64,000 bases of DNA from Orbicella franksi. Taxonomy: Eukaryota. Under the pieces are notes generated by a model that worked only from the letters and a program-made list of their open reading frames with translations, was not told where the DNA came from and did no database searches. The translations under genes were made by a program, and so were the position numbers. This document shows, piece by piece, positions 3,731-28,548 of this stretch; the first letter of the stretch is position 1, and the number at the start of each line of letters is the position of its first letter. The stretch spans positions 15,748,001 to 15,812,000 of the forward strand of contig OZ116700.1 of the NCBI GenBank assembly GCA_964199315.1, read 5' to 3'.

Positions 3731-4511
3731 AGTATTCAAAATTAAAAACGGAAAAACATTGAAAAATATCATACTCTTCCTATAGTTAGGGTGTAGCCCA
3801 AACTACAGCTTAATTTGCAGCTAGCTTTTGATGTGTGGCTTATATAGACTACATACGAAAACATGCCAGGATACTTTTCTGTGAAAATTATCTGTTCTGA
3901 GGAGCGCACACAGGTTTTTGAGAGGACCAATGTGCTCTTTGAGGAACAGATGATGTCCATGGACAAATAGATGCGAATATTTTCCTGCCAAATGAAGGCT
4001 GTTGTGTTTATTGTCTATTGAATATTTTTCACAACACGCTAAGTTTTGAAAATTGGGGAACATCACCTCAGTTTTATCTGGTGTATAATCAGTCACGTGA
4101 CACATTTACACCAACTGCGTGCTAGCTAAAATATCTGATGGATTATAATGCCAGATATTAACTTGTCCTCAAGTGTGTAAGAGGGAAAAGTTGTTAATGT
4201 AAATGGTAAGGGAGGTTAAAGTCTTGTGTAGGATGGGTGTATGATTTTCTGCTTTCAAAAGACAGAGCTGTCCAAAATTGTTTTGCTGTTCTCTTTTGAT
4301 ATAAATTCACCAAATATTGCCTGCTTAATGACATTTTGCAGGGCACAGAAAACAAACTGAATACAGTCAGCAGAAGTATGATTATCATTGAAAGTTTAAT
4401 GTTAGGTCTGATTCGATGAATGTGGATTGGAATAATTCTTATAAAAATCCTTATCTCCCTTAGTTGACAAAACAGAACATAGATTCTGAAAAGAAGTATT
4501 TACAAAAATTG

Positions 4512-5030
4512 GGGTGTCTACAAAACGAAGACCGAAGATCGAAGACCGAAGATCGAAGACCGAAAAACGAAGAGCTCATATAATTTTACGCCTTTAAAAC
4601 TCAAGGCAGTTATAATCATCGATAATCAGGCTTAAGTACTTTATCGGACGCTATCACACGCGAAACCGACGGGGTCTTCGTTTTGTAGTTTAGGCCGGGT
4701 CAAACTACAAAACGAAGACCCTCGCTCAAACGCTCTTTAAGACGCCAAAAGACGCGAAACCGACTGGGTCTTCGTTTTGTAGTTTAGGTTGGGTCAAACT
4801 ACAAAACGAAGACCCTTGCTCAAAAGCTCTTTAAGATGCCAAAAGACGCGAAACCGACGGGGTCTTCGTTTTGTAGTTTAGGCCGGGTCAAACTACAAAA
4901 CGAAGACCCTCGCTCAAACGCTCTTTAAGACACCAAAAGACGCGAAACCGACTGGGTCTTCGTTTTGTAGTTTAGGCCGGGTCAAACTACAAAACGAAGA
5001 CCCTCGCTCAAACGCTCTTTAAGACCCCAA
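4512..5030 (+). repeat. Left TIR: CGAAGA(C/T) micro-repeats, unique segment, then 4 x 94-bp hairpin-containing units
   Basis: CGAAACCGAC recurs at 4661, 4755, 4849, 4943 (period 94). Each unit contains GGGTCTTCGTTTTGTAGTTT-N10-AAACTACAAAACGAAGACCC. Confidence 0.95.
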
Positions 5031-5904
5031 AACTCTTTTCCAAATTTCGATCTCACACGATCAGGCGTTTTCTGTTAGGGGTGGACCATTAGATTTTTGA
5101 TGGGGGGGTTGTGCAAATCCCCAAAAAATATCGATCATATGCTTCTAGTTTAAATAAAATATCATGCACATTTAAGATGGAAAAAAATATTGAGCAGCCG
5201 TAATCAGGGCGCGGGAAAAGTGGCTTTGAGTCATCTTAGTTACCATTGGAAGGAAAAAATGCCTGGTACATGTCAGGGATATATATTTTTGATGACTCGT
5301 TTGTCGCCTCCTTATAAGGTACCTTTCAATTGCGATGCCATCAGATAAAGCTACGTTCTTTTTTGGCGAGGTAGCCTGGCTATTGGCGCGGTAATTTATT
5401 CACATCTGAAACTCGAAAAACTACTTAGCCGTTCTTTTTATCCGCTCAATTTGGACACTTAACGTCTCGTAGAAAAGGTATAGAGATGTAAAGGTGTCCA
5501 AATAATTTATTTTAAACACGAACCTTAAATCCTTTGAGTTTTGATGCCTGGAGTTCCGTTGTGTCTGTTTCCAATCACGTGTAAAGATTTGTTAAAACAC
5601 AGATTTCGAGAAAGTTCGAAGATGTGTCAGTCCAAAAAATCGGGTTTGAACTTGCGTCTTTAAACAACCCTTGCTATGAACGACTTAATTTTTTGTTTAT
5701 CTTTGGGTATTTTAAAGAAAAAATCTCTCGAGATGTATTTAAAGCTAACAAAAACTTGCTCCCCAGCGGAAATCACACCTCCATTAAAAAGTCCAATTTG
5801 AGGACTTTTCATTAGTCGATCTTTTCATTCTTCCAGTGGCGATAACAAAGAACGCTTGATCGTAGGCTGCCGCTTTTTAAAATATGACCTAGCGTTGAAC
5901 AACG

Positions 5905-7680
5905 ATGGCAAATTTTCGGAAGTTTAATCTTCCTCAACTTCTGAGAAGGGATCCTGAACCTCATAATGACGGGATACCGCGGTTTGACTGCAACAAATTG
6001 CTTCTTAAAGATCGTGTTGGCCACAGATCATTTGGCGATGTTTATACTACCGATTACCACGCGCCAGGAAAGGACACATCAGAGACGGTAATTATCAAAA
6101 AAATGTTGAATGCCCTGGATTCAGAAGAAAAGAAAATCTTCTCAAAAGTGGCTCTATTGAATGGCCTAAATCATCGCAATGTTGTTAAATTCATGTCAGT
6201 TTGCCATCAGCCGCCAGCCATAATGCTGGAGTACGTGTATTTTGACTTTAAACTCTTCGGTCCAGAGGTACGTGTTAGCGCACTCTCTGATTTCCTTTTA
6301 AAGATAAATGAGCACAACTGCGCCGGATTTCATGAAGTTGTTAATCATGCAGCTACGGAGATAATCGGTGGCCTAGCTTACCTTCACGGCAAAGGGATAG
6401 CCCACAGAGACCTAAAAACAGCGAACATTTTAGTAAGTAATCAACATTACAGCTCGTTGTCTGTGGATACAGAAGAATTCCAGCAGATTTATCAAGCAAG
6501 GCCTATTGCCTGCAAGCTCACTGATTTCAGTGAAAGTAGATCTCTCTTCATTCAAACCCAGGCAGTCCTTTCAACTAAGACCACCACCATTGATCGGGGG
6601 ACAGTGGTTTATATGGCACCAGAGCTTCTGGTGAAAGAGAACATCATACCGAGTGCGTCCATTGCCGATCTCATGCTGGCAGACATTTGGGCCCTAGGCA
6701 TGATAATTTTTTCGATGCTTAACCCCAGCCTTAAAACCCCCTACATCATGGAAGTGCGATCTGAAGGAGGTGTAAGCAGTCAAGAAAAGTTGAAAGAATT
6801 CATCGTCTCTCTTTTACAGAAACAAAAGCTTCCATTACAAGACGAAAAATACGCCATTGATCGTGCTACAGTTTGGTGCGAGTTAGAGAAAGTTTACAGG
6901 GGTTGCACTAATTTTGCCCGAAAGGAAAGATTGCCCCTGCAAGAGGCAGCCCAGATTTTAGCAAGGAGACAAGATAGATTCTCGAGGGACATGCAGGTTG
7001 TTAACCTAAGGGTTAGCCAGGCAACTGCTCTTGAAGAGTTTGATCAAAGGTTAGCCGGCAAACTCGAAGGAGATGTAGAGTCCTTACAGTCGGAGATAAT
7101 GCCAGTGAATGATGCGACGAACACGTGTGCTTTCCTCTCGATTGGTATTGCAGAAAGCATCTTATATGAATCAGAAATGGAGGAATTTTTTGAAAATTTA
7201 CCAAAAGCCGTGGAGTTGACCATTTTGTCTTTACCAGAGAGAATAAATGAGCACCGCGACCTGGGAAAAACCTACGATGCCCTAGAAGCATATGAAATTC
7301 TTAAGCAACAGCAGATTATCAAATACCTGTTGGAATTCTCCGAGAAACTGCCCTATGCAGACGGGGTATTTACTTATGAAGGAAGAGAAAACCTTTTCAC
7401 GAAACTTTGTGTTCTTGGTACTGAGCGCTTCATTGCAATTTATGCAAGTGATCCATTTGTACTGACCATTGGTTGTCATAACAGCAAACCCTTTGTCATC
7501 GACACGCATCCAGTTGCACCCCCCTTCGGAAATGGAAATGGCCTCGTTCTTAGAGGAAATGAAAACACCCCTGAGGTTTGGATGTCTATCTGTGTGTGGC
7601 TTTGGCAGAGACTTTACCATGGCGGAGTGAATCCAACCACAGCTCAATCATTAGCAGTCGTTACACTGGATGCAAAGTAA
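5905..7680 (+). CDS. Protein kinase domain fused to a C-terminal putative papain-fold (C76/herpes tegument USP-like) peptidase; transposon cargo
   Basis: 591-aa ORF. Kinase motifs GHRSFGDVY, VIIKK, HRDLKTANIL, KLTDFSE, YMAPE, DIWALG. C-terminus has TNTCAFL (Cys codon 7126-7128) and FVIDTHP (D 7501, H 7507). The stop TAA lies inside a GTAAGT donor-like motif (7677-7682). Confidence 0.85.
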   Translation: MANFRKFNLPQLLRRDPEPHNDGIPRFDCNKLLLKDRVGHRSFGDVYTTDYHAPGKDTSETVIIKKMLNALDSEEKKIFSKVALLNGLNHRNVVKFMSVCHQPPAIMLEYVYFDFKLFGPEVRVSALSDFLLKINEHNCAGFHEVVNHAATEIIGGLAYLHGKGIAHRDLKTANILVSNQHYSSLSVDTEEFQQIYQARPIACKLTDFSESRSLFIQTQAVLSTKTTTIDRGTVVYMAPELLVKENIIPSASIADLMLADIWALGMIIFSMLNPSLKTPYIMEVRSEGGVSSQEKLKEFIVSLLQKQKLPLQDEKYAIDRATVWCELEKVYRGCTNFARKERLPLQEAAQILARRQDRFSRDMQVVNLRVSQATALEEFDQRLAGKLEGDVESLQSEIMPVNDATNTCAFLSIGIAESILYESEMEEFFENLPKAVELTILSLPERINEHRDLGKTYDALEAYEILKQQQIIKYLLEFSEKLPYADGVFTYEGRENLFTKLCVLGTERFIAIYASDPFVLTIGCHNSKPFVIDTHPVAPPFGNGNGLVLRGNENTPEVWMSICVWLWQRLYHGGVNPTTAQSLAVVTLDAK

Positions 7681-8039
7681 GTGTACTCATTATTAATCTC
7701 TTGCAGAAACCCATAAGGGTTGAAATGTGTAACTCCCTATAATTCGTATTGTACAAAGCGTTTACACATTTGTTGCCATTTATAGTACCATATTTGGAGT
7801 ATCAGGAAAAAAAATTCAATTTTTTTTTTAAATTCACAGCGCGCGCTAGGCTGCGCTTAATGGCGCAATCTTGTTTAGTCTTGTTTTTGAATAAGCTTGG
7901 TTGTATAAAGTTAAATTCGGTTAAATTCTTCTGTTTCGTTGCCATTCAATAGTCTAGAAAACTTATCTTGGATACACTTAATGAGTTCTCTTTTTCGGTT
8001 AATTTACAGTGTTCAGGTGGAAATTCAAGTAACTTACCG

Positions 8040-8297
8040 CGAAACCGAAAATGTTGTTGCGTGTGAAGAACCACGAGCCGCTAGGTGAGTGGATCTACAA
8101 CAAACTTTGACAATATTAGGACGCAAATTTGTGGTATGATTCTCGCCTTATCAAGATTGCAGCGCTGAACCAGTGCTGATATGTTTGACAAAACTTTCGC
8201 TGATTTCGTCAGCTTTCAAATTTCATCCGTCTGTACTCTTATTGACAATAAAAATTAGCCAATTAGCGGGCGAGAAATCGCTCAGTAATTGTAAAAA
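8040..8297. mobile_element. Anthozoan MITE fragment inside the MULE
   Basis: Recognised motifs ccacgagcc..gagtggatctacaacaaactttgacaat and ttattgacaataaaaattagccaat..gcgagaaat..ttgtaaaa. Confidence 0.5.
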
Positions 8298-8566
8298 AAG
8301 TATTCGTGTACAAACTCTTCGTGTTTCCAAATATGGTATTTGGCAAAACTGAATATTCCAACACTGTGAGCGCACGCTACACATTTCAATCCCTTATGTG
8401 CTTTTGTCTCTTGCAAATGACGTTAACTTGTTGTGTTCGACGACAGGAGAAGGCAACCTTAATCTTGTGTAGCTAAGAAAAATCGAGATTTTGTGTGTTC
8501 TGCATTTGCCTCGCTTTCGTTTGGACGCAAATTTGCCTCGCTTTTGTTATTGGCGTGATACCTTAC

Positions 8567-8770
8567 ATGGATTTCCATCACACCACCATTGTCGACAGGG
8601 TGAGGGATTACCACAAGAGACTCCTCCTTGAGGCTTGGCTCTATAGGGGAGACTCAACGTGGTCAATTTCATAATATGGGCGTTGGTCTGACAAACTTCT
8701 AATTTATACTTCATTTGTAAAGTTTTTCTGAACCAGTTGCTGAAGAAGTGTACCCTACTGCACATAACCA
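8567..8770 (+). mobile_element. Penelope-like element 3' fragment (GIY-YIG C-terminus plus tail)
   Basis: Translates MDFHHTTIVDRVRDYHKRLLLEAW, similar to the PLE 'D...T.I.D....Y.KRL.LEAW' segment, followed by the CTGAAGAAG motif (~8740). Confidence 0.6.
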
Positions 8771-8922
8771 GGATAGAAGGGTAAGGAGTAATGCTTAAGT
8801 TTTAGAATATAAGCAGGAAGAAAAAATGTATTTAGTATAGCAACATATGATAAAGTCATTCATTGGTGTAAGGCTTCCAAGTTCTACGCTCGCCCTCCTT
8901 AACTTTTTGGCCTTCATTTCAG

Positions 8923-10572
8923 CGAAAGAACCAAAAAGGCATTGGTGACAGTTCTCGCATGAACGCAGAGCAAAGCAAAACACACGGAGAAAAGGAAAGA
9001 AATGCAGGACTACTAGACAAAGCAAAGGTACGACTCAACATCCTGAATATCTGGGTTACTGTTTAGTAGAGCAATAAATAAATGTTGATGCGAAAGACCT
9101 CCACAGTACCAAATACCAATGGAGATCTTAGTGACATTTCTTCCCTTCTTTCCAGCAAACCGAACGTCCCCGTACGGATGAAGAGAGCATAAAAAAGCAC
9201 CGTCAGAAAACTGCACGCGGAGAAAAGGTACGTTTAAACACTAAGATCGTCTTGAGTATTCATCAACTTTGACATCAGATGGTTTGCGGAATTAACTATG
9301 CACATAGTGCAATGGTCGTTGTATAGCGCCTGTAGGCTTGTTTAATCAAGTATGGCCGTAAAATTATTAAAAAACACCGTCCGCCCTACGCCCCACATGA
9401 CTTTTCATCAAAGCATTTCTTCCCTTCTTTCCAGCAAACCGAACAGCGTCCCCATACGGATGAAGAGAGCGTAAAAAAGCACCATCAGAAAACTGGACGC
9501 GGCGAAAAGGTACGTTTAAACACTAAGATCGTCTTGAGTATTCATCAACTTTGACATCAGATGGGTCGCGGAATTGACTATGCGCATAGTGCAATGTTCG
9601 TTGTATAGCGCCTGCATGCTTGTTTAATCGAGTATGGCTGTAAAATTATTAAAACATACCGTCCGCCCCACGCCCCACCCCAAAAAAAGACGAACGAAAG
9701 CCCCACATAATTGTCTCTCCCGGATATTATTTCAAGGGTTGTCATTCCTGATTATATAGCCCTTATTTTTCATTAGAATATAGAGTAAGACTTCTGATGG
9801 TCATTTATCGACGGAGTGATAAGATCATGTTGTCTCATTTTATGCTCATGAATACAAACATTTATGACACATCGATTCCCATCTATATGTACGAAGCCCA
9901 TCCTGAAATAAAAAAAAATACTCCTGAAAGAGGATAGAAGTTTATGGGTTAACCTCAGGAATGTCCTTCAGCCTTTGCGCCTGTTGTCCGTGTTTCTGTA
10001 CAGTTAAAGCTAGATATTCCCGTACTTTATTAATGTTTTCTTTTTCAGCCAAAAAAACACAATGACACTGGCGATTGTACTGATATGAATAATGGCAGTG
10101 AAACAGAGGAGGAGCAAACGTGTTCGCAAAGAAATGAGGTACAACAGTTAGCGTATTAGGAGTATTTGTTAAGTAGAACAATAGACATGAAATCTGTAAT
10201 GTAAAATACAAGAAAAACAAGGAATGAAATTTGAACGAGTATACACTGCTAGTTGATTTTACCAAGCTGTTGTCGCTTAGGAGTCATCCACACAGTTTAT
10301 CCAATAGAGAAGTTTATCCTAGTGAGCACGTAAAGGCTGATATGATTTTCGCAATGAAAATATCGATGTATTTAAGATTTGGCTTTATTTGTTGGAAAAG
10401 GTATTACTGGCCTATAGTCCTAACTTCGAACATTTTTTACTGTCTTTGCGCTTAGGAGCAATGTAACGATGAAGTGCTTGTGTGCACGGATGATGCTCCG
10501 GTGTTACCCCAAGTTTCAGGTCTCAGTGACTCTGATAGCAGTAATGATGACTTGTTGTGCATCTTATATAAG
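8923..10572 (+). CDS. Five phase-0 internal exons (8923-9027, 9156-9227, 9435-9509, 10049-10138, 10456-10572) encoding a charged linker upstream of the transposase
   Basis: Each has a polypyrimidine-AG acceptor and a GT donor, length divisible by 3 (105, 72, 75, 90, 117 nt) and no stops: RKNQKG..DKAK, QTERP..RGEK, QTEQRP..RGEK, PKKHND..QRNE, EQCNDE..ILYK. Confidence 0.7.
9134..9680 (+). repeat. ~280-bp tandem duplication of an exon plus intron
   Basis: catttcttcccttctttccagcaaaccgaac...cgccccac occurs twice (~9134-9397 and ~9414-9678). Confidence 0.9.
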
Positions 10573-10642
10573 GTAGGCGAAATTCAATCGGGATCTTTTT
10601 TGTATTTAATATACTACAATTTCGTTATTTCGAAAGTGTTAT

Positions 10643-11115
10643 CCCTCGGACGTATAAGCAATTTCCCACCACTACGGCGGTAGGGGATGGTGGTGGGGGG
10701 AAATGATGTACCGCAGTTTCATTCTATTATTGAACAGCTTACTCTACAAGAGGACATCATTTGTGGTGGATGTGACGTCATATATACCTAGGTTCCCCCC
10801 CCCAACCCACTTAGATATGCAATCTTAGATTTGCACTGTTTTCTAAGAAAGTCTGGAAATGACGGACATCGAAAAATGCCAGAAGACTTGTGCAAGGTGG
10901 AATTATGTTGTTTTTTCCCTTGACATGCTGCTAATTATCAAGTCACGGGAACGTCAAACATCGCGGACACATAGCTGACATAATTTCCGCAAGGGATTAA
11001 TTAGCAGCTGCTCAATGTTTTGCATTCATTAAGCGAAATTCCTTATTCAAAACTACTGAAAACTACCTCGAGAAGGGTGGCATCCACCAGCCCCCCTCCA
11101 TTGTGCATCCGGAGG
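10643..11115. mobile_element. piggyBac-like MITE in the last intron, flanked by TTAT on both sides
   Basis: TTAT|CCCTCGGACG ... CATCCGGAGG|TTAT; imperfect short TIRs of a known anthozoan MITE type that normally sits in TTAA. Confidence 0.5.
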
Positions 11116-11506
11116 TTATGTCGGGGATTAAAAGATGTATCTCCTAGGCAGAGCTCTTATCAAATTGACATAGTGAATATATGGAAGACATGAACAGAAC
11201 TGCGGATTAAGAAATAAATGAATGAAGTGAACCTCATTCATTTCGTCGAACCTGTTAGGAAAAACTGCAAGTGTATGCAAGCAGACACTCACGTGGAGAG
11301 GATTTTTGAAACCTTGAAAACTAATTAATAAGGACGTTTTTCTTATTTTTATGTTAGTAAAAACATAAGCCGGGTTCTGCAAGAATTACCTTTAAACAGA
11401 TACAATTTTGACTTTATACTGCACAGTAAAAACAGGACGTATTTTGTAAATCACTTTCCGGCAGTAACTTTGTTTGACTATGTATTGTCCTTCTATACAT
11501 TTGCAG

Positions 11507-13922
11507 ACAAAGGAATGTTGGAATGGTGACGAAAGGATACCGTTGTTTGAGAAGGGATGACCTGAGAGATACACAGTCGATCAAGCCTTAGAAATCATCA
11601 GCGAACACAGCCTCACATGCGCAAAATGCACCTGTCAACCTTTGAAGGTGAGAGAAAATGCTTCGTTCCTGATCAATTTGAAATGGTTTGACAACTGGGA
11701 AGACATAAAAGCCGATATGAATGGTGTATACGACGGCGTCCTAGATGTGCAGTGTGGACAATAGAATGGTATGATGGTATGTGGTCATTACTGCATAAGA
11801 AGAAAGCCCCGCTATCTTCCATGGAAAACTATCATTTAGTTCAGAATTCCAGGAGGAACAAAGCTGCGCCATCTCTTGCGCGTTCAATATTTATATTGAA
11901 AGACATGAAAGGAAACATCGTTAACAATGTTTGTCTTTTACAATACCATGTTGACAACGCTGAAGGACGAGTTGATGATGTAGAGGTGCAGAAGCATGGT
12001 AACAGCCGATCCTCAAACCCAAGGCTGTTCTATCCACTTAAGAAGAGCATGCTTGGGTCAATTAAAGATAACGTGAAGAAGAAAGGATCGCAAGGAGTTT
12101 ACAGCGACCTGAGGAAAAAGGCTGGTGGAGTTTTCGGTGCTTCTGTGTCGGAGCTGCCTCGCGCGAAACAGCAAATTTACAACGCAAAGTCCAGGATGAG
12201 CAGTACTGTCACACAGGATGACGTTGAAGATCTTTTGAAGTATGCCCAAGACAAGGAAGACCTGATTCTGCACCACGCCGACTATCCCGAAGATCTATGG
12301 GTTCTAGGAACTTCCAGCATGTGTTCCGATCTGTCCAAGTACACCACATCAGGCATACTTTCCTACCCATTCTGTGTTGACCCAACATTCAAAATGGGGC
12401 AGTTTGAAGTTACTCCCATTGTGTACAAAAATCAACTCTTGAAGTCTAAGAGGACGAATGAAAGCCCTGTTTTTTTAGGTCCCACAATGATTCATCATAA
12501 GAAGACCTATGCCGCCTACAGGACTCTTGCATCGACGTGTGCAGCAAAATGCAAGGAGATAACAAAGGCAAAAGGTTTTATTACCGACGGAGAAGAGAAT
12601 CTCTATAAAGCCTTTGAACATGAAATGAAAAATGCAAGGAGCCTACGTTGTTTTAAACACTTTGAGACCAACTGCACGGAGAAGCTAAGAACAACGGGAA
12701 TTCGCAAAACAAAGGAACAACGATTCTTCCTGCAATGGGTTTTTGGCGTTCATGGGAAAGAGGAAGGCATACTCGATGCTGATAATCAAGAAGACTTGCG
12801 CCAATGTTTGGACTTGGCAAAGATGGAAATAGAGAGACGAGAGCGGGAGGTTCTGAAGAGGGAGGATGAGGCGTATAAACCGAAGTTTTGGTCCTTTCTC
12901 GACGAGCATTTTGAAATGATGGGTTCTCACATGGTCGTGAATGTCCGAAAGGAAGCTGGAATGGTAGTAGAAGATGACAGCAAACCTGCTCGCTGTTATT
13001 CCAACAATTCAGAATCAATGAATAACGTCATGAGGTCTGCCAAGGAAACGTTCCTCAAAGAAAATCCCTGTATTTCACAGCTGAACAAGATTCAGTTTAC
13101 ACAAAATGTTTTTGAGGTTGTCCATGCACACCAGATGGAAGAGCTTCACTCTGCAATCGCTGGGCTCAGTGATGAATATATACCACCCCAGTGCCATCCA
13201 GCGAAAAGCAAGTATGCAAACTGGTGGAGTTCTGCAATTTGAAGTTGCAAGTGCCGGATCTGAAAACGGAACACTGCAGGTTTCAGTTTACAGTGATCAT
13301 GCGACATGTGTGTAAACGGTACAAGCACGACAACATCTGCAAGCATTCCCTGGCAGTAGCTGCATTGAAGTCAATTCTAGCCGCCCACCTTGATTTCATC
13401 CGAAAGAAATCAAAGAAGGTTTGTAGTAGAATGGCTCTTGCCGAACACAACGTCCGAAAAGAGACAGCCGGGAAGAAGGGAGGCAAGAACAAATATCCCT
13501 ATCGACCAGCACGGGGCAAGCCAACTACAAGCACGAGCGTATCAACAGAAGTAGCTGACACCCCTTTGTACTCTGAGATTTACCACAACGAAAATTCATT
13601 TGTGTTGATGTTCCTGTCGGAGGATGCAAAAAGGTGTAAATCCTGTCATCTAGACTTCTGGCACAAAAAGAAGACAATTCCCTTCGACGTCATCTTCTCC
13701 CACAAAGAACGATGGATGTATCCCATCAATGGAGATTGGGCAAATTGTAGGCCATCCAACCGTGAGACCGTCAGGTACTACCACGCCGCAAAGAAGTGCC
13801 TAATGGGCCGGTTTCCCTACTTCTCCGAAGAGTACATCCACATTCCTGGGGACATCAAGGACAGTCTTCGTGAGTCTCACAAAACATACCTCACGAGCGA
13901 GTTTGAGCTAAACTTTGATTAA
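11507..13922 (+). pseudogene. MULE transposase terminal exon (DDE core, SWIM Zn finger, C-terminal CxxC..HxxxxC), disrupted
   Basis: Acceptor ttctatacatttgcag at 11506, phase 0. Stop TGA at 11558-11560; frameshifts at ~11740 and ~13190. Motifs VDPTF (D 12379), FITDGE (D 12586), CFKH, NNSESMN (E 13012), SWIM-like VCKRYKHDNICKHSLAVA. Confidence 0.88.
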
Positions 13923-14007
13923 ATCTTTCCTCGATATGTGAACACTTACGAGCAAGCCTTGCAGTCGCCCCATTCCGGTGTCAGCATGTTTTATACAATG
14001 TTCGATT

Positions 14008-14278
14008 AAATGCGCGGGCTGTGACTGGTCAGTTTGAGTTCATTATTAAAGAAATAAAAAACGTATCCGAATGCATTGTTGAGTTATATAAGCACGTGGT
14101 GATTTTTAAGAACACAAGAGAAGTGCTAGAAGCACTTGGCTGCGCCTCGTGCTTCTCTATGCACTTCTGTCGTGTTCTAAAAATCACCACGTGCTTAAAT
14201 AACTCAATAATGCATTCGGATACATTTTTTATTTCTTTAATAATGAACTCGAACTGACCAGTCACAGCCTGCGCATTT
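14008..14278. mobile_element. ~271-bp near-perfect palindromic MITE
   Basis: aaatgcgcgggctgtgactggtcag... / ...ctgaccagtcacagcctgcgcattt. Mirror ORFs 14021+ and 14029- begin with identical peptides. Centre ~14143. Confidence 0.85.
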
Positions 14279-15022
14279 TATAAAACATGATGAAAACGCA
14301 CCATTTGTATTTGTATTAGAGAAAATTTACTACAATTTATCTCGATTGGCTGGCTTTCAGTGTACGCATTGTCATAGAAACTGAATTAAGCACAAACAAT
14401 GGTTTATGGCGGAAGAACAGGGTCTTAAGTAATCTAAGTTGGCAGAAGAACAGACAGACGCCGAGATTTCTAAAACAGTTTTCTCGACTGTAAGCACTTT
14501 TGGATCAGGATCCTCAAAATTGGCAACTTTCTCGAAATTATTAACTTAAAATGAGGGCGGGACATTTGTTTGTTGTCTTTTTGTGTCTGTTAGTTGGTTG
14601 CCAAAAGTGTCTTCAAAAATGTAACTCGGTAGATCGCGTTTTAACCACTGGATGAATTGTTTCTTGCGTGAGTTGTTGAATGATACGCGCTGTAGATCGG
14701 GAGTTAAAAAGTAAAATGAAACTGTAAAGCACACATTTTATCATAATATTTCCCCGGGAGGAAATTAAGTTAGTTGATCATCAGACATCTTAGGAGGTTC
14801 TCGTTGAAAGTTAAAAAATAGATATTGTTAAAACATAAAAAGTACACACAGTATATTATAATGAAATTTTTAAGACGCATTTTCGGAATATCGCAAAATC
14901 TACAGTCCGCTGCAATGCGGCAGCAAAAAGAAAATAATCTCGAGGTTCTCGTGGCTCATGTTCATATTTCAAAGTCTTGCATAAGTCAACATGTCAAAAC
15001 TTTTTTAACCGAGTAGTAAAAT

Positions 15023-15540
15023 TAAATTTAACATCTCATACCAAACATTTTACACGTCAAGTTTTCGAGCCTTTTGAAAACGCTAGAATTAGAATGTGGG
15101 AAAGTTGCATTTAAATGTTCACATTTTGGTGGATTATTGTATAAACGACAGCATTATAGACGCCGTTGTTACGGCAATCATTTTGTTACTATCGTAGAAT
15201 ACCGTAACTATGGAATTATATTTTATCATGAGTTCGTTTCAGTTAGCATTATAAGATGTACGTTTGTAATCATAAAGGTAGTAAATTTAAATTGAACATC
15301 TCATACCAATATTTTATACTCACGGTTTCAAGACTTTTGAAGACGCTGGAATTAGAATGTGGGAAACTTGCATTAAAATGTTCACATTTTGATTGATTAT
15401 TGTATGAACAAAACTATAAAAGACGCCGTTGTTACGGCAATCAATTTGTTACTATCGCAGAATACTGTAACTATGGAATTATATTTTATCCCGAGTTCGT
15501 TTCCGTTAGCATTATACGATGTACGTTGTAAATCTTAAAG
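15023..15540 (+). repeat. ~265-bp diverged tandem duplication, non-coding
   Basis: aacatctcatacca...gacgccgttgttacggcaatc...gatgtacgtt occurs at ~15023-15277 and ~15288-15540. Confidence 0.85.
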
Positions 15541-16082
15541 CATTAACTCACTCGAAAATATCAGATCAAAGCTTAACGACAAGCCGGATTGTAGTCTGGA
15601 TATTCACTGGCGCTGAATATTGACCTAGACAAGTTTGTATTTTTGGCACCCGAAGAATTTGTTGTTCCCCACAGGATGCCATTTTCTGTAGCATTACTTT
15701 CGTTTAATCCACATTGTCTGCTCAACATAAATATATACATGTATACGCGTTTCTCATGTCAGTTTCCCTTTGCTATTCCAGCAGCACAGCTCTTGGCTAC
15801 CTATACTATTTTTCGGTCTAGTCTTCGAGCTTTGATCTGACAACCTTTATGGAAAAAAAATTCTTGGCCATGCCCTACTTGGAAGGATACGCCTGTATAT
15901 CAGGACAAGGAAAGGGAATGACATTCGGGTTTCAAATACAATGCATATCGACTATACTTGGATTGAATTGTTGTAAAAATTATTTTTGATACTGTTATTC
16001 AACTGAAAAAAGGCAATAGGGAATCGGAGTATAAGAATAAAATAATCGTTAATTTCATTATTCGTCATGCTTTCTTCAAGGA

Positions 16083-16769
16083 AACTGTTTGAGCGAGGGT
16101 CTTCATTTTGTAGTTTGACCCGGCCTAAACTACAAAACGAAGACCCAGTCGGTTTCGCGTCTTTTGGCGTCTTAAAGAGCGTTTGAGCGTGGGTCTTCGT
16201 TTTGTAGTTTGACCCGGCCTAAACTACAAAACGAAGACCCAGTCGGTTTCGCGTCTTTTGGCATCTAACAAAGCGTTTGAGCAAGGGTCTTCGTTTTGTA
16301 GTTTGACCCGGCCTAAACTACAAAACAAAGACCCCGTCGGTTTCGCGTCTTTTGGCGTCCAACAAAGCGTTTGAGCGAGGGTCTTCGTTTTGTAGTTTGA
16401 CCCGGCCTAAACTACAAAACAAAGACCCCGTCGGTTTCGCGTCTTTTGGCGTCCAACAAAGCGTTTGAGCGAGGGTCTTCGTTTTGTAGTTTGACCCGGC
16501 CTAAACTACAAAACGAAGACCCTGTCGGTTTCGCGTCTTTTGGCGTCCAACAAAGCGTTTGAGCGAGGGTCTTCGTTTTGTAGTTTGACCCGGCCTAAAC
16601 TACAACACGAAGACCTAGTCGGTTTTGCGTGTGATAGTGTCCGATAAAGTACTTAAGCCTGATTATCAATGATTATAACTGCCTTGAGTTTGAAAGGCCT
16701 AAAATTATATGAGCTCTTCGTTTTTCGGTCTTCGGTCTTCGATCTTCGATCTTCGTTTTGTATACACCC
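16083..16769 (-). repeat. Right TIR: 6 x 94-bp hairpin units, unique segment, micro-repeats
   Basis: GAGC(G/A)..GGGTC recurs at 16091, 16185, 16279, 16373, 16467, 16561. The outer ~150 bp is the reverse complement of 4512-4660. Confidence 0.95.
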
Positions 16770-17153
16770 CAAAAATTGATAAGTGAATAATGGATGGAGA
16801 GTTATTTTTCTTGGTAAGCATAGACAAAAGATAAAACATAAAGGTAACTTAGACTAGTAGATTTATACTAAACCAATTAGATTATTTGCTCTTGATTTCT
16901 ATGTGTGATAGTTGACGAGGGCACAGCACGCAATAGAAATCTCTAGCTCATAGTCTAATTGCTTAAAGTAGTTGGTAGACCTTAGCCTTTTGTCCAGGAG
17001 AAAAGGGTCTGGTTGTCAAAATAAGGTTCGGATAACAAGATGTTTGTACATGTCAGTTGCAAAAAGAATGAAATCAAGCAAAACTCGCTATTCTAAGACC
17101 CATCCTGTCCATTTTAATATCTTTTAGTGTTGAACAGTCGGATTTCCTCTTGT

Positions 17154-19265
17154 TCAGCTACACTCCCGCTGAAGTAACATTCCAGTATCACTCAGATCAC
17201 CTATAGCAAGAAAGTATATTATTTTTTAACAGTGAGTTGACATTCAAAGACAATAAAGTCTGACCTGACAAGAAATTTTCATGTTGGTCATGTTTTTAGT
17301 GGAAGGGAGCACAGAGGCAGTTAATGGAAACACTATCAGGGTAGCAAAAGTAAAGTGATAGGGGGTGGCACAAGGAAAGTGATAATTTAAAAAGGGTAAG
17401 GGGAAGCTGTGAAAAGCCTACATGAGAATATATGTAGACCCAAACATAACCCTGCCCAATTTAGTTGCACAGCAAGCTTTCCAAAAAATCAGTTGGAGAC
17501 AAGTAAAAGGCACACTGTGGCAGACATTATAAATCACACCATATACTCATTACAAATTGACTCTAGGGTCAAGGTGTTCATTCGAGCTTATTGCCAATAC
17601 AGTGCCATTGTGAAATCAGTTGTTAAAAATAGCTATTATGGGATTCTCAGGGGGCTAATAAGTAGGTATTTGCCTCCTAAGCATCTGATAATAGCTATTT
17701 GAATCAAAATCAAAATGGCTGCCGTATTGACAAAAAGGTCCCCTTTGAACAATATCATATGCTCGTTTCGGAAAGCATTTGGCCCACAATTTTTTCCAAA
17801 GGAAACAAGTAATCCAAATAAGGAACTTTATTATCAGCAAAAGATACTGGTAATTACAAATTAATTTTCTGCAACAAAATAGTCTTTGATCTAACACAAT
17901 AAACTATTCAAATGATAGAATATGGAACAAGTTGAAGAATTCACTTTATGTGCACATACCCTGAATTTCCTTTAAGAAGTTGCTTAAAGTATGAAAATAA
18001 CTCAAATATCTCAAGCCACAATTTAAAGTTATCTCTTGTGATATACTGTCAGTAGTTACCTGTATGTTGTTCGTGCAACAGAAAAATGTTGACTTCTATT
18101 TTGTCCCTATCAAGCTTCACTGGCAGGGGAGCATGTGCTCGTGCACTCTAATTGAGGCGACAAACTCAGTGAAATAAACTTAACAAACATACTGCAATAC
18201 TGAAAACGAAATTTTGTTTAGTACAGAAAGAGGTGAAAAAATCCTCAAGGGAAAAGTCAGGAAAGTTTAACTGAATAAAGGGAAAAATGACAACGTGAAG
18301 AAAATTCACGGGAAATTTAAAAATGTCAACAGACCTGATTTAATCGTCTGGAAGAAACATTTGGTGTCACCGTGAATTTCATGATATTTTTACATAACAA
18401 AGAAGAACAATTTGATGAAAACTAGCCAGTCTGTTACAGTCATCAGAGTAAAAAAGGGCTGTAATTTGAGGTCAGAAACAGCCACTAAAACTGACATTTC
18501 ATATTTGGTCATGGAAAATTTCATTATGATCAGAGAAGGGAAAGGGAATTTTGAAAAGTGATGTCCATAGCAACCATGTAACTAAGATAACTAGCAAACC
18601 AGCACTTGTCCTGTAGATGTTACCTTTTTTTTTACTTGCAAGCATGTGATTATTGAAAATGAGGAAAAATAAGACAACACCAGTTCGGGTTATTACTGTG
18701 TCATGAATTATGATATTTCTTTAACACTTGAAGCAATCTGTCCTTGCATTTGAAAAAAAGGAAGTGATGACTCACTGTTCCAACAATAATTATGCCAGTT
18801 CAAGAACTCCAGACAAACAAATATCCTTGCACTAAAACATGACTGACAGAAACAAGGTATGATCAATAGCACAAGTGAAACTTATCAAAAAAGCTGCCAT
18901 CCTCAACTGAAATGACACTTGTCTGTAAATTTCAGGAGTCAGCTTTTACCACATACTCCTTGTCTGAGGATAGTGTATGCTGCAACAGTCTCTACTAAAA
19001 TTCCATGCACATGAAATTTAGGAGCCAGCATTTGTCCACATATCCATATTCTTGCAGATCTGAATCCAGCTTTATATTTAAAGTCCACATACGACTTTTT
19101 AAAATAATGTGTGTGAAAGAAGAAACTCAACATTAAAGCAAGGCAAATAGACGGAATTGTAAAAATAAAGATATCTTAATAAGGATCTACATTAAAATTA
19201 TCTCACCTTTCCACATAAACCACAGAAATCAGAATCAAAACCACGAAGATCTTCCTAGGAGTCAT
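17154..19265 (-). pseudogene. Small four-exon gene relic encoding a secreted or membrane-anchored protein
   Basis: Exon 1 19265-19207 MTPRKIFVVLILISVVYVE + GTGAG donor. Exons at ~19090-18950 and ~18200-18061 contain stops. Terminal exon 17200-17154 (DLSDTGMLLQRECS*). Confidence 0.35.
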
Positions 19266-19974
19266 TGCACCACAACACTTTAAAAGTGCAAGATGTGTTG
19301 GTGACCCTCGGTGCGACAAGAAAAAGGAGATTAAAACGATATGGATAAGAAAAGCGACTTCTTTTGCCGAGATAAATCTTCGAAACACCTAAAGTCAACG
19401 ATCAAAATATGGCAGAACTGTATCGAGCCGAGAGAAACTGGGGTAAATAGGCTTCGTGTAGGAGAACAGTTTCCGTCCTTAACAACAGTCGGTAACCAAG
19501 GGTTCGAACGTCACTACCGGCTTCACGTTACATGGTATGAGTCATTACGAGCTTCGCATTACATGGTATAGCCATGACAACCAACTTATTTCAAGATAGA
19601 ATTACATGACATGATGATATCACATTACTTATTTCGACCTATTTCGACCTGTTTCATGTCTTTTCGACACATGATGAGTCGTAATATGTCGTAATATGAG
19701 TCGTAATATGTCGTAATACGTCGAAAAGTAATTTTGCTACAGATGGCGCGTCATAACAACTAACCCTGGTGGATACAGCTCGTCATGATGTTGGCGAAAA
19801 CGTGCACCTGGAAAAGACCATAAAGCGCTTTGTGGAAGGTTTTTAGAGTCGACAGGGAAGGGTCCAAGCACCAAAGAGGTCCATAAATGGCTCCAAGAGG
19901 ATCAATTACAAAGAGCATGAGCCTACAAAAGAGAAATCTTAACAGAAGATTTCAAAGGAGACCCTTACTCTCCA

Positions 19975-20520
19975 GGAAATATTCTCGTAAGTAACCAGCA
20001 TTACTGCAGCATCACTGATGAAAAAGAATTTCAAGACCTGTGGGAATCAAGACCAATTATTTGCAAGCTCACTGATTTTGGTGAGACTAAGTCTCGCAAG
20101 ATCCAAAAACTTTGATGCAAACTAAGACAGCTGCCTTGACAGAGGTATGCCTACTTACACGGCGCCAGAGATCTTGTTATTAGAGAACGACTTCCCGTTG
20201 AAGGAACCATTGAAGACCTTAAAAGAACTGGGCTTATGGAATGGTACTTTTTCTCATCTGTAATCCCCAATTAGGATTCCCTTACCAGGAAGACATGAAG
20301 AAAAGTCAGAACAAGATAGCAGGCATTGAAAGCTTGCTCAAAGAATGCAAGAGGCCAGCCTTTGGCAAGAATTACATCCAACTGGTAAAGACGGGAGAAT
20401 GGTGGCATTTATATCGAGTCCATGAGGCATGCACATGCTTTGAACCAGAACAAAGGCCATCAGCTGCAGACATTATTACACTGTTGCTTGAAAGAGAAGA
20501 GGAGTTTGGCAAATTACACT
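19975..20520 (+). pseudogene. Decayed second copy of the cargo kinase family (C-lobe)
   Basis: NILVSNQHYCSITDEKEFQDLWESRPIICKLTDFGE, DRG..YTAPE, GMVLFLICNP..PY, RPSAADIITLL. Shares the distinctive NILVSNQHY..EEFQ...RPI.CKLTDF insert with ORF 5905. Confidence 0.85.
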
Positions 20521-20737
20521 GTGGAAGCTTCAGAAGTGAGTCAGCTGAACCAATCTGTAGCCAGCACAGTTGCGAATGTACATGACCCTGGCCCCAGAAC
20601 TACTTCAAAGTCAATGAAAGTTGTTGAGAAAAGTATTGTGGTAAATGTAGATGAGGAAGAGAGAATCTTTGATGATAGGTGAGTTTTCGTGGTCAGTCCT
20701 TTCAGGTTTGAAAAGGAGTTGCAATAAAGTGTGCATG

Positions 20738-22429: not shown

Positions 22430-23623
22430 ACGGCAAAAAACATTTAACTCAAGAATTCAACAAATGTCTACCTTCCCACTCAGAGAATGAACTCCTGAAA
22501 AATAACACCTCTAGAAATCTTAAAAGATTCTTTGCTCTTTAAGAAAATTATTCTACACCACTCCATGACTAAACGCCCTGTGACGGTCAAGTCAAGCTCC
22601 CCAGGCTTGTGATCACAAAATTTGATAGCACCTTCATGGACTGGCCGCGATTTTGGGGACAGTTCACTGAAACCATTGATAAAACAAGCATAGCACCAAT
22701 CATGAAATTCTCATACCTCTAAGGGAGCTACTTGATCCTAGAGTAAAAAGGACTACAGAAGCACTGCCTTTCACTGTTGAGGGGTACAACTGCGCTAAGA
22801 GTATTTTAAAGGAATAATCTGAGAAGGATTCTGAAATAGTAAAAGCCTACACCAGTGAAATACTGCTTCTCCCTACAATAACTGGAGCAAATCCTAACAA
22901 GATAAGCAGGCTCAGTGAGAAACTGACCTATTGTGTTCAAGTATTACAAACATTGAACAAGTTGGAACAAGTAAACGGAGCTACCTTGATGACACTAGAT
23001 AAATTGCCTGGTATCCGTGGGGACCTTGTGCGAATAGACCCTATAGGAAGAAGTGGGATTTTGTGAAACTCAGCAAGGCCATTCGTTTGTGGTTAAGAAG
23101 AAATCTGGCTGATACTAAATCAACTGGGAGAGATTTCACTGAACACCGAATTCCATAGTGGGATTGCTCCAACAAGCTCTACCAAGCGCGTGAAATAGAA
23201 TTTAATCCCAAAGAGTGTGTCTGCTGAGGGCAGGTACGTCATAAACCATCGGACTGCCAGCAGATTAACAAGGTAGATGAAAGAAGACGAACCCTGGTTG
23301 GGGAGAATTTGTGTTTTAATTGTGCCACACCTAATCATCATGCTGTAGAATGCTACAGCAAAGCCACATGTCAACATTACAAGAAACGTCATCACATGTC
23401 AATTTGCGACCGCAAGCAAACACCCCAACCTGGAACTGACGATAAGAAAACCCTGATGACAGGAGATGGAAGTAACGAAGGAATATTGCCGATAATCCCA
23501 ATGAAAGATGACAGGATAATTTGCTGTGCGTTAATTGACACTGGGGCCAGAAGTTTGTATGCTTCAGGAAAGTTAATAGATCTTCTGAAGAAGAAACTGT
23601 GTGAAACCAAAACAAAACGAGTG
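22430..23623 (+). mobile_element. BEL/Pao LTR retrotransposon, 5' part (gag DUF1759-like, Zn knuckles, protease N-half), decayed
   Basis: QVKLPRLVITKFDSTFMDWPRFWGQF; CFNCATPNHHAVEC..CQHYKKRHHMSIC; ALIDTGA. The reading frame resumes at 31055 (..TKTKRV|DMLMS..). Confidence 0.85.
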
Positions 23624-23730
23624 CGGAGGAACATGCGCGGGGCTAGCGTGAGGACGCACACTTTGTGAGGGAGCAATATCGTCCCCAAAGAATAGAGTAA
23701 ATCGCTGGTTACTTCTATAAAAACTACTAT

Positions 23731-24665
23731 ATGCAGGATAAAGGCAAGACCAAAGGAAAACACAAGAGAGGAGAACGTGGCTCTGTCGAAGAAGACCAAC
23801 AAGGATCCAAACGTGCGAAAATCGCGGATGCCGAGCTTCAAATAACGTCTAAGGTTAACAATGACGAAGGGCTGTCTGGCGCCAACGAGCAAGAAACCGC
23901 ATCAAAGGGTAGTGCCGAGGAGACTAATCTTTTAGAACTAAAGGAAATGTTGGTTGATATTCAGATTACGGTCTCCAATATTCTCCGTGAAAACTCAAAA
24001 CTCGCCAACGAGGTCGCTGAGCTACAGAACGCCTTCTTGCAACAGAAAGGTGAGCTTACCAACGTTAAAACCGCCTTAGCCAAGTGTCAGAAACAACAAG
24101 ACGATTTGGAAATTCAGCTAGCCGCAGCGGGAAAAAAAACAACAACCAAGAAGCGGAAATCGCAGAATTATACGATCTCCAAGACGCACTGGAACAATAT
24201 ACTAGAAAAAACTCACTCGAAATCCACGGAGTCCCAGAATCCGCGTACACCTCAACTGAGGAGGTTGTCCTTAAGCTCGCCAAGGCTTTAGACGTGGATA
24301 TAAATCCAAACGACATCGAAATATCACACAAGCTCCACCTGAAAGGTGTAAAACCAATTATTGTAAGGTTTCAAAGCCATAAAGCGAAAACAAGAATGTA
24401 CAAGGGGAGAGCCAAGTTGAAACATGTCCACGTCTCTGACCTATATCCCGACTCAACAGCGGCAACTAGAGCAGAATCAGGACGAATCTACCTAAACGAG
24501 AACCTAACATCCTACAGGCGGGATATCCTTAAACAGGCGAACCAAAAGCAAAAGGATGGTTTGTTGACATCCGTGTGGTCAATGGACGGGAAAATATTTG
24601 TCAAAACCTCCCCGGAGGGAAGCCCGATCAGAATCTATGAAAAAACTGACCTGGAGAATCTCTAA
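23731..24665 (+). pseudogene. Tx1/L1 ORF1 (coiled coil + RRM + CTD), one frameshift
   Basis: Overlapping ORFs 23731..24291 and 24084..24665; EQYTRKNSLEIHGVPE, PIIVRF, IYLNENLT, WSMDGKIFVK. Confidence 0.85.
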
Positions 24666-24830
24666 GGTAACCACAGTAGTATGATGTACTCTTAGACTTG
24701 TAGGTGGGGACAGGAACCAGGTGTCCGAGAGGCCAGAAGGAAAACTCTTAAATAAGTTTTTGTTTACTATTTTTTCTTTTCGTGTTCGCTTTATTTCTTT
24801 ATTAATTTACCATAATTTTCAGTTTTCTGC

Positions 24831-27800: not shown

Positions 27801-28548
27801 AGTTTATGTCTTATCAAGAATTTAAAAACAAATTCACTTGCAAAACAAACTTTCTCCAATTTTATCAAGTTGCAAGTGCGATACCGAAGCATCTAGCCAC
27901 AAAAGCGAAAAACACATTACCACCAGAAAGCGAACCATATATCGAGAACAACCCTCTTTTCCAACTAGACGACTTGACAGAAATTAACTTAGTCAAAGCC
28001 AAAACTAGGAACTTCTATTGTTTAATTAACAAAAAAATTCACACGAGGTGTCAAACTGGCCCAACGAAATGGAATCAAACCATGCAGTTGGATGGGGAGA
28101 CATGGGAAAAAATATTTTCCTCGCTGAAAAACATTTGTAAGGAAACAAAATTAAAAGAATTTCAATTCAAACTTATTCATAGAATTGTTGTAACAAAAAA
28201 GGAACTTTTTAGATACGGAATCAAAACGGATGATGAATGCCTCTATTGCGCTGAACATGATTCAATCGACCACACATTTAATGATTGCGAATTTGTTAAG
28301 AGCTTTGTTAAAAACATCATCGACTGGTTTAATGCTGTCAATAATTCGAATTTTAGTCCAACAATAGAAGAAAAACTATTTGGCATCTGTCCGGCTCATA
28401 CGATAAAACATTATTAAAGAAATTTAATTATACGATCTTGTTTATGAGATTCTACATCTACACTTGTAAGATGCAAAACAAAGCTATTCACCTCTCCATT
28501 TTCGTTGATAAAGTGTTAACCAAATACAGAATAGAACATCTTTCTTAA
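24831..28548 (+). pseudogene. Tx1/L1 ORF2 (APE endonuclease, RT, CCHC Zn finger), several stops and frameshifts
   Basis: SLNVRGLR, LQETY, GGDWN, SRIDFF, KSPGEDG, WRPITLLN, RQGCPLS, QYADD, CLYCAEHDSIDHTFNDC. Confidence 0.92.

Follow-up and report, generated by a model that had tools for sequence, protein, structure and literature searches.

We characterized a transposable element of 12,258 bp that occupies positions 4512-16769 of a 64,000-nucleotide stretch of Orbicella franksi DNA (GenBank assembly GCA_964199315.1, contig OZ116700.1, positions 15,748,001 to 15,812,000, forward strand), hereafter the window. The element carries two genes on the same strand: an upstream gene that encodes a protein kinase domain joined to a putative viral tegument-like deubiquitinase (VTD) domain, here called kinase-VTD, and a downstream, decayed transposase gene of the Mutator-like element (MULE) type. 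Both lie between long modular terminal inverted repeats (TIRs), which are flanked by a perfect 9-bp target-site duplication (TSD; CAAAAATTG). A preliminary description of this DNA had reported the TSD and TIRs of ~520 and ~690 bp, and both reports hold, with the TIRs measuring 521 and 683 bp (Table 1).

The element begins with GGGTGT and ends with ACACCC, and the two TSD copies abut these termini directly. Given the base composition of the window, the chance of a random 9-mer match is ~5.6e-6. Inverted arms of 500 nucleotides (nt) at 4533-5032 and 16256-16755 are 92% identical, and the right terminus is a near-identical reverse complement of the left terminal GGGTGTCTACAAAACGAAGACC. Each TIR is built in the same order, with a terminal 22-mer, an array of 7-mers, a unique stretch of ~85 bp and a run of 94-bp units, and every unit includes a hairpin whose 20-bp stem is perfect (DNA fold -24.5 kcal/mol, z -6.0). 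The 16-mer CTACAAAACGAAGACC is found once per terminus and twice, inverted, per 94-bp unit; all 22 matches fall within the TIRs, where 0.06 would be expected. Such TIRs, built from tandem subterminal repeats with the potential for secondary structure, are those of foldback (type 2) elements. Elsewhere in the window we found no other copies of the element or of its TIR units, and the region is a single insertion of a two-gene foldback-type MULE. In a sister family (L009, 77-80% nt identity), one side (12302-14208) has an expanded run of ~20 94-bp subterminal units in tandem; with 4, 5.8 and ~20 copies across TIRs, unit number is highly variable.

The preliminary description had also named a MULE DDE/SWIM transposase. 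Its D..D..CxxH..E core is present, but the gene is not a single open reading frame (ORF): it is broken into four frame pieces and the CxC of its SWIM finger is cut. Alignment to sister copy L182, whose transposase is intact, revealed four deletions: 1 bp near 11743, 3 bp in frame near 12139, 278 bp at 13181 with the loss of ~90 profile positions, and 2 bp near 13306 within the SWIM finger, the last of which disrupts CxC and leaves only CKRYKHDNICKH. Because three of these deletions disrupt the frame, the window copy is a non-autonomous relic that could move only with transposase from a sister copy.

The membership of this transposase in the MULE superfamily follows from its relatives. On the window copy alone Pfam MULE stays below threshold (E 0.033), the window transposase pieces gave no significant Pfam match, and the family profile found no match in PDB. 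We identified 86 relatives, the full-length ones spanning 830-890 amino acids (aa). Among 21 aligned relatives, 13 match PF10551 MULE (best E 3.6e-8) and three match PF04434 SWIM (E 8.9e-5), and the window transposase is 41-80% identical to aligned family members. In this alignment D239, D309, E444 and H333 are invariant and C330 is nearly so, and within the SWIM columns CxC..CxH, C635 and C637 are invariant and C646 and H648 conserved in at least 90%. A (C/D)(2)H motif between the second D and the E is common to MULE and hAT transposases (PMC5499845). TSD lengths are 9 bp in the window, L182 and L004, 9-10 bp in L001 and 10 bp in L112; that of L152 is 10 bp with one mismatch. The long TSD, the DDE MULE domain, the C(2)H motif and, at the family level, the SWIM finger thus identify the lineage as a MULE.

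The kinase-VTD gene and its C-terminal domain

The upstream gene bears out the intronless 1.8-kb kinase ORF of the preliminary description: it is a single open frame of 591 aa whose end-to-end alignment with homologues identifies it as intronless, and its N-terminal part matches Pkinase (Table 1), which makes it a divergent member of the eukaryotic protein kinase superfamily. At the family level, over 28 full-length proteins with identity down to 31%, K65, HRDLKxxN, DF(G) and APE are invariant or nearly so, and N174 likewise. The window copy differs from the family consensus and from P0001 in three core motifs: the Gly-loop carries a G to R change (6016-6042, reading GHRSFG), the alphaC Glu codon is deleted (6136-6159), and DFG has become DFS (6520-6537). 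Since all three residues are intact in P0001, the kinase activity of the window copy is probably impaired, as judged from these motifs. Relative to its 98%-identical sibling P0001/L091, the window ORF displays 13 non-synonymous and 8 synonymous changes and one codon deletion.

The C-terminal ~230 residues gave no Pfam match, even at E<=10. We therefore turn to structure for this part of the protein. An AlphaFold2 model of the domain, computed from an alignment of 27 sequences, has high confidence (pLDDT 89.6, pTM 0.87), and its best Foldseek match is the murine cytomegalovirus M48 ubiquitin-specific protease (2j7q, E 7e-5), followed by the viral tegument-like deubiquitinases (DUBs) 8adb, 8adc and 8add (E 1.4e-4 to 8.2e-4). 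TM scores of the top structural matches lie at 0.51-0.60, AvrPphB was also matched, and herpesvirus UL36 large tegument proteins in BFVD match the predicted fold with E down to 1.5e-5. The VTD fold is related to YopT/AvrPphB-type proteases, and the hallmark of the family is an "invariable Asp-x-His", with His and Asp adjacent, unlike in other DUBs (Erven 2022, PMC9741609). Across the 28 full-length homologues (31-75% identity), C408 is invariant in the family context NDGTNACAF, and in the context IDTHP T534 and H535 are invariant and D533 is conserved in at least 90%; no conserved acidic or amide residue follows His535 among them. By predicted fold and motif, we propose that the domain represents a divergent VTD-like subfamily and a putative deubiquitinase. 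The peptidase announced in the preliminary description thus takes the form of a predicted VTD, or herpes tegument-like, cysteine deubiquitinase fold with Cys and Asp-x-His.

The domain is abundant: its profile retrieved 855 clusters at 50% identity, 537 of them at E<=1e-10, and the matches place it at ~350-580 in proteins of ~600 aa. When the kinase-VTD alignment was searched against IMG/VR viral contigs, no kinase-VTD architecture was found, only generic giant-virus kinases (22-34% identity). These matches cover the kinase part only, and a viral origin or relative of kinase-VTD is not supported.

Linkage of the two genes across related loci

A sister copy from the same family, L182 (ENA ERZ25072724, 8784-21071), is collinear with the window element from terminus to terminus at 91-95% nt identity and sits at a separate site with its own perfect 9-bp TSD, GAATATCTA. 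Its 887-aa transposase frame is intact, and a frameshift near residue 481 interrupts its kinase-VTD gene. Decay is thus reciprocal, affecting the transposase in the window and kinase-VTD in L182, which points to a master copy with both genes intact. L001 combines a kinase 75% identical to that of the window with an intact 831-aa transposase, a 9-10-bp TSD, and TIRs that begin GGGTGTCC..AAAAC followed by TAAGACC 7-mers. The check suggested in the preliminary description, whether one pair of TIRs with a TSD of its own encloses both genes, therefore came out positive in L182 and likewise in L001.

Most of the more distant loci preserve the arrangement. In L002 the kinase is 35% and the transposase ~25% identical to that of the window, the latter split by a nested insertion, and the kinase of L003 is 57% identical. 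L004 has a kinase 32% identical to that of the window, TIRs and a 9-bp TSD, ATGAATATG, but no detectable transposase. Look-ups that started from the transposase found an upstream, co-oriented kinase gene in five of five cases (L005, L006, L007/L008, L009, L010). In all, the order kinase to transposase on the same strand recurs in nine of the ten informative external loci (L001, L002, L003, L005, L006, L007/8, L009, L010, L182), in agreement with the co-orientation first noted. In the window, L182, L001 and L004, the TIRs enclose kinase-VTD and the TSD flanks them externally; no long TIRs were detected in L005, a short scaffold. Gene models that fuse Pkinase, VTD and MULE/SWIM extend the linkage to additional lineages (P0193 from Stylophora, P0200 from Paramuricea, P0267, P0277, P0295 and P0350).

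The lineage is multicopy and mobile. Clusters at 90% identity have 74-381 distinct members, many of them truncated, and an exact search of JGI metagenomes with the terminal 20-mer returned 90 stretches. Among 82 element ends we counted 68 different flanking 9-mers, with similarity ending exactly at GGGTGT, and the same metagenomes yielded two short two-ended derivatives with 10-bp TSDs.

Both genes evolve under constraint, with ratios of non-synonymous to synonymous substitution rates (dN/dS) between families of 0.19-0.28 (kinase-VTD) and 0.10-0.22 (transposase). A full-length accessory gene, present in nine of ten informative loci at this dN/dS, is not the picture of a Pack-MULE. In this lineage kinase-VTD is a dedicated, conserved gene maintained by purifying selection, which excludes a one-off capture. 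The earlier view of a dedicated, full-length module rather than a captured fragment is upheld by the conservation of both domains down to 31% identity.

The two genes have distinct histories. The window kinase-VTD is closest to L001 and L006 (75-76% aa, 81% nt, with similarity limited to the ORF), and the window transposase is closest to L009, L010 and L005 and only 43% identical to those of L001 and L006. Maximum-likelihood trees group {window, L009, L001, L006} for the kinase (100/99) and {L001, L006, L003, L007} for the transposase (100/100), and in approximately unbiased (AU) tests each data set rejects the clade of the other (p-AU 9.6e-4 and 5.6e-209). Synonymous divergence (dS) agrees with the trees: it is 0.62 for the window-L001 kinase pair, whereas the window-L009 pair gives ~1.05 (kinase) and ~1.18 (transposase). 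The simplest reading of these sequence comparisons is that MULE lineages have exchanged kinase-VTD by recombination at least once.

Relatives with a species name occur in Scleractinia (Acropora, Stylophora, Porites, Desmophyllum), Octocorallia (Dendronephthya, Paramuricea) and the sea cucumber Holothuria, the nearest being scleractinian and octocoral proteins. The lineage is widespread in corals and other cnidarians, and the Holothuria members hint that it is distributed more widely or has been transferred horizontally. Several of these transposon genes (P0022, P0039, P0040, P0074, P0090, P0193, P0200) bear the public names of host kinases, with labels such as "cyclin-dependent kinase 8" in Acropora millepora, "BCK1/SLK1/SSP31" in Holothuria leucospilota, "SSN3" in Stylophora, "ulk2" in Desmophyllum and "CDK2" in Paramuricea. 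This is likely a systematic mis-annotation, by which transposon genes inflate coral kinome counts.

Two of the external loci display further nesting. The insertion within L002 (15349-20175, ~4.7 kb) has 72-nt TIRs and carries THAP, DDE_Tnp_4 (Harbinger/PIF-type) and YqaJ/viral alkaline exonuclease genes, a set that is unusual for a Harbinger-like element. The kinase-only element of L004 (7187-16484) lies within two concentric inverted-repeat pairs, at 4087-5134 / 17752-18799 (1070 nt, 93%) and 1862-2143 / 18808-19089 (282 nt, 97.5%), which suggests that it is nested inside a larger foldback structure.

Outside its two genes, the window element holds tandem duplications and a block that is missing from L182 (Table 1). 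This block is either a small nested foldback insertion, similar to a miniature inverted-repeat transposable element (MITE), in the window copy or a deletion in L182. Comparison of the whole element with other families by tblastx detected no third conserved ORF, and no TIR or TSD was seen to frame the kinase gene by itself.

About 3 kb outside the element, a decayed kinase-family fragment (19921-20582, plus strand) with motifs spread over three frames (NILVSNQHY..CKLTDFGE, APE and the C-lobe) is 30-40% identical to the element kinase; from this identity and its position outside the element, we infer that it is what remains of another, older lineage within this transposon group. Transposable elements abound in the remainder of the window (23392-28417, 38944-39546, 49944-53000, 62122-63351), and no obvious host gene was seen there. 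The remainder includes an ORF with baculovirus FP-like domains (24084-24665), a reverse-transcriptase ORF (25555-27585, RVT_1 E 2.6e-37), zf-RVT (27503-28417), a Tc5/pogo helix-turn-helix ORF (38944-39546), a second RVT_1 (51133-51804) and a DUF7869 ORF (62122-63351).

Table 1 Features of the two-gene element, in positions of the 64,000-nt window (HMM, hidden Markov model; res, residues; f, frame)
Feature	Position	Strand	Details
TSD, left copy	4503-4511		CAAAAATTG; same letters as 16770-16778; abuts GGGTGT (4512)
Left TIR	4512-5032	+	521 bp; terminal GGGTGTCTACAAAACGAAGACC, then 7-mer CGAAGAC/T array 4526-4573, then 94-bp hairpin unit x4.0 at 4658-5032
Kinase-deubiquitinase gene	5905-7680	+	One open frame, 591 aa
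Kinase domain	6010-6948	+	res 36-348; Pfam Pkinase PF00069, E 3.7e-27
VTD-like cysteine peptidase domain	6988-7677	+	res ~362-591; predicted fold and motif
Putative catalytic Cys408 in NDATNTCAF	7108-7134	+	Present in window copy
Asp533-x-His535 in VIDTHP	7495-7512	+	Present in window copy
Spacer between the two genes	7681-11560		Non-coding; holds the 282-bp tandem duplication
Internal tandem duplication	9135-9678		282 bp x1.9; inside spacer
MULE/SWIM transposase pseudogene	11561-13922	+	Same strand as, and downstream of, kinase-VTD gene
Transposase frame pieces	11561-11743; 11743-13181; 13182-13306; 13307-13922	+	Four pieces: f2; f1; f2; f3
Family-HMM match	11561-11761		Frame 2; HMM positions 1-34
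Family-HMM match	11692-13239		Frame 1; HMM positions 33-509
Family-HMM match	13085-13312		Frame 2; HMM positions 599-646
Family-HMM match	13176-13919		Frame 3; HMM positions 621-846
CVDPTF	12373-12390	+	Transposase catalytic core
ITDGEE	12580-12597	+	Transposase catalytic core
RCFKH, C(2)H motif	12646-12660	+	Between second D and E
NSESMN	13006-13023	+	Transposase catalytic core
~580-bp block without counterpart in L182	14033-14612 (region 13998-14612)		Overlaps 111-nt-arm hairpin 13998-14108 / 14178-14288
Tandem duplication	15013-15540		263 bp x2.0; 3' non-coding part; common to L182
Right TIR	16087-16769	-	683 bp; 94-bp unit x5.8 at 16087-16630; 7-mer array 16715-16755; terminus ...TATACACCC
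TSD, right copy	16770-16778		CAAAAATTG; perfect 9 bp; abuts ACACCC (16769)

Possible role of the kinase-VTD protein

We consider it fairly probable that these loci represent a two-gene foldback MULE lineage in which kinase-VTD is an accessory factor that alters host post-translational marks, and of which the window copy is a relic. In the mechanism that we propose, the transposase would bind CTACAAAACGAAGACC at the termini and in the subterminal 94-bp hairpin units, and excision and integration would follow the MULE pathway, with the flanking DNA forming hairpins and the target being cut with a 9-10-bp stagger; cut-and-paste through flank hairpins is known for Muta1 (PMC5499845), and in the present lineage the 68 distinct flanks at 82 ends lend cut-and-paste indirect support only. 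The window copy would be mobile only in trans. The kinase-VTD protein would serve the element by rewriting host post-translational marks: its VTD domain may strip ubiquitin, NEDD8 or another ubiquitin-like modifier from the transposase, or from host factors involved in restriction or DNA damage, and its kinase may target or regulate the VTD activity. For the deubiquitination step, the leading hypothesis is a role that would parallel that of herpesviral UL36 and the one proposed for the VTD and OTU domains of Helitrons (PMC9741609).

Several points weigh against this interpretation. The VTD assignment is a prediction from modelled structure, with moderate TM scores and no sequence match in Pfam or PDB; a VTD-domain sequence profile run against PDB found no VTD chain. 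The nearest solved kinases are distant (E ~1e-11), a distance that leaves no substrate class nameable from sequence. Among the external loci, L004 has no transposase detectable by HMM and Pfam searches, L007 has no clean TSD, and in L006 no TIRs were detected. The groups compared in the AU tests were picked after the trees had been seen.

A more specific proposal is that kinase-VTD acts as a counter-defence or host-manipulation effector, a portable two-enzyme module exchanged by recombination among the MULEs of cnidarians and at least one echinoderm, which would shield the transposase or dampen restriction or DNA-damage signalling that depends on ubiquitin, in the manner of herpesviral UL36. 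We advance this tentatively, as a possibility with the odds against it; it would give substance to the "signalling or anti-defence cargo" of the preliminary description, a role that we infer by analogy. If true, kinase-VTD would be the first kinase-DUB "anti-host" gene to be described from a eukaryotic cut-and-paste transposon and would establish a new link between transposons and herpesviruses through VTDs.

The fixed position and orientation of kinase-VTD beside the transposase in nine of ten informative external loci, together with purifying selection comparable to that on the transposase, could instead indicate a direct co-factor of transposition, an analogue of MURB that phosphorylates the transposase or forms part of the transpososome; the selected kinase-domain accessory ORF of the Oxytricha TBE transposons is a precedent. 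We regard this as unlikely, because the module appears to have been swapped between transposases that are only ~43% identical. Such a swap is easier with conserved host targets, and therefore favours these over a co-evolving transposase partner; moreover, Muta1 and other MULEs transpose with the transposase alone (PMC5499845). The same tree incongruence, which implies that the module moves between elements, would also suit a selfish hitch-hiker, that is, cargo which benefits only itself or the host, for example a domesticated signalling or immune gene that MULEs spread, as has been proposed for the amplified kinase genes of Rhizophagus, and has no role in the life cycle of the element. L004, in which the kinase is kept without the transposase, and the high-copy kinase genes that adjoin MULEs in Rhizophagus, like the kinase fragments in maize MULEs (PMC8647823), are in line with it. 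This seems improbable to us given that the gene sits within the TIRs and inside the TSD in four loci and is kept across transposase divergence down to ~25% identity. Moreover, either gene decays per insertion (the transposase in the window, kinase-VTD in L182 and L009), as expected of transposon genes that are selected only on active master copies.

Pack-MULEs do take up host fragments, including kinase fragments in maize (PMC6431247, PMC8647823), and one might suspect a single such capture of a host kinase, or the chance adjacency or nesting of two unrelated elements. We give this very little credence: the two-gene order recurs in nine external loci that represent several assemblies and families, with all five transposase-first look-ups among them, the ORF is full length with invariant catalytic residues in both domains and a dN/dS well below 1, and the kinase gene has no TIR or TSD of its own. 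An accessory factor that acts on host post-translational marks remains the reading that we favour.

Comparison with known systems

A search of the open literature, which did not extend to Repbase or Dfam, turned up no MULE described as having a kinase or kinase-VTD gene. The MULE survey of Dupeyron lists a kinase in no MULE group (PMC6446971), and neither "kinase" nor "Mutator" is mentioned in the VTD paper and its supplements (PMC9741609). The lineage had been called undescribed in the preliminary description; as far as the open literature goes, this stands for the kinase-VTD gene, but foldback MULEs (Muta1) and a protease-bearing MULE (MuDR-6_HM) are known. Already on record are animal foldback MULEs, a DUB-type protease in a MULE, VTDs in Helentrons and a kinase ORF in TBE; a conserved kinase-VTD fusion as a standard MULE component appears new in the open literature, and it may have been annotated before in Repbase or Dfam.

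Cut-and-paste transposons are usually seen as a transposase plus ends, and well-supported accessory genes are rare, with mudrB, the TBE ORFs and the protease domains of MULEs and Helitrons as examples. The predicted domain would add to the VTD (herpes tegument-like) family both an architecture and a transposon superfamily that are new to it, and the discordant trees point to an accessory gene that passes between transposase lineages as a module. With a large family, clear catalytic residues, strong purifying selection and intact natural copies, the role of a transposon deubiquitinase becomes directly testable.

Maize MuDR is a two-gene autonomous Mutator that carries the mudrA transposase and the element-specific helper mudrB; the two are convergently transcribed, and MURB has neither a kinase nor a peptidase domain. 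The present lineage resembles MuDR in having a second, accessory gene, but its genes are co-oriented and its accessory protein has two domains of enzymatic type. Plant KI-MULEs carry ULP1. MuDR-6_HM of Hydra is a MULE with an OTU protease domain (PMC6446971), and Helentrons carry VTD and/or OTU (Erven 2022, PMC9741609). Together with these systems, the present lineage places a ubiquitin or ubiquitin-like papain-fold protease, here a predicted one, inside a DNA transposon. VTDs have spread via transposons, mainly Helentrons, and cnidarian VTD fusions have been noted (PMC9741609). The Helentron VTD is part of the RepHel polyprotein, whereas here the putative domain is the C-terminal half of a separate, kinase-fused protein in a MULE.

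The TBE transposons of Oxytricha (Tc1/mariner) encode a 57-kDa zinc-finger and kinase accessory ORF under purifying selection (10.1101/2025.03.17.643836) and, like the present elements, keep a kinase-domain gene beside the transposase. Compared by description, the two differ in superfamily (Tc1/mariner versus MULE), host (a ciliate versus animals) and architecture (zinc-finger-kinase versus kinase-VTD). Pack-MULEs and kinase genes near MULEs in rice, maize and Rhizophagus (PMC6431247, PMC8647823) likewise associate kinase sequence with MULE TIRs, but they are captured fragments or neighbouring host genes without cross-lineage conservation, unlike the full-length, selected and lineage-wide gene found here inside the TIRs.

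By their features, the nearest counterparts are the Muta1/Phantom foldback MULEs (Aedes aegypti Muta1; Liu & Wessler 2017, PMC5499845; Dupeyron 2019, PMC6446971), which share long foldback TIRs of subterminal tandem repeats, an 8-10-bp TSD and a DDE transposase with (C/D)(2)H, often with a SWIM finger. The subterminal repeats of Muta1, a "type 2 foldback", are extra transposase-binding sites that strengthen binding (PMC5499845). Muta1 encodes a transposase only, and to this plan the present lineage adds a conserved ~590-aa kinase and putative deubiquitinase gene.

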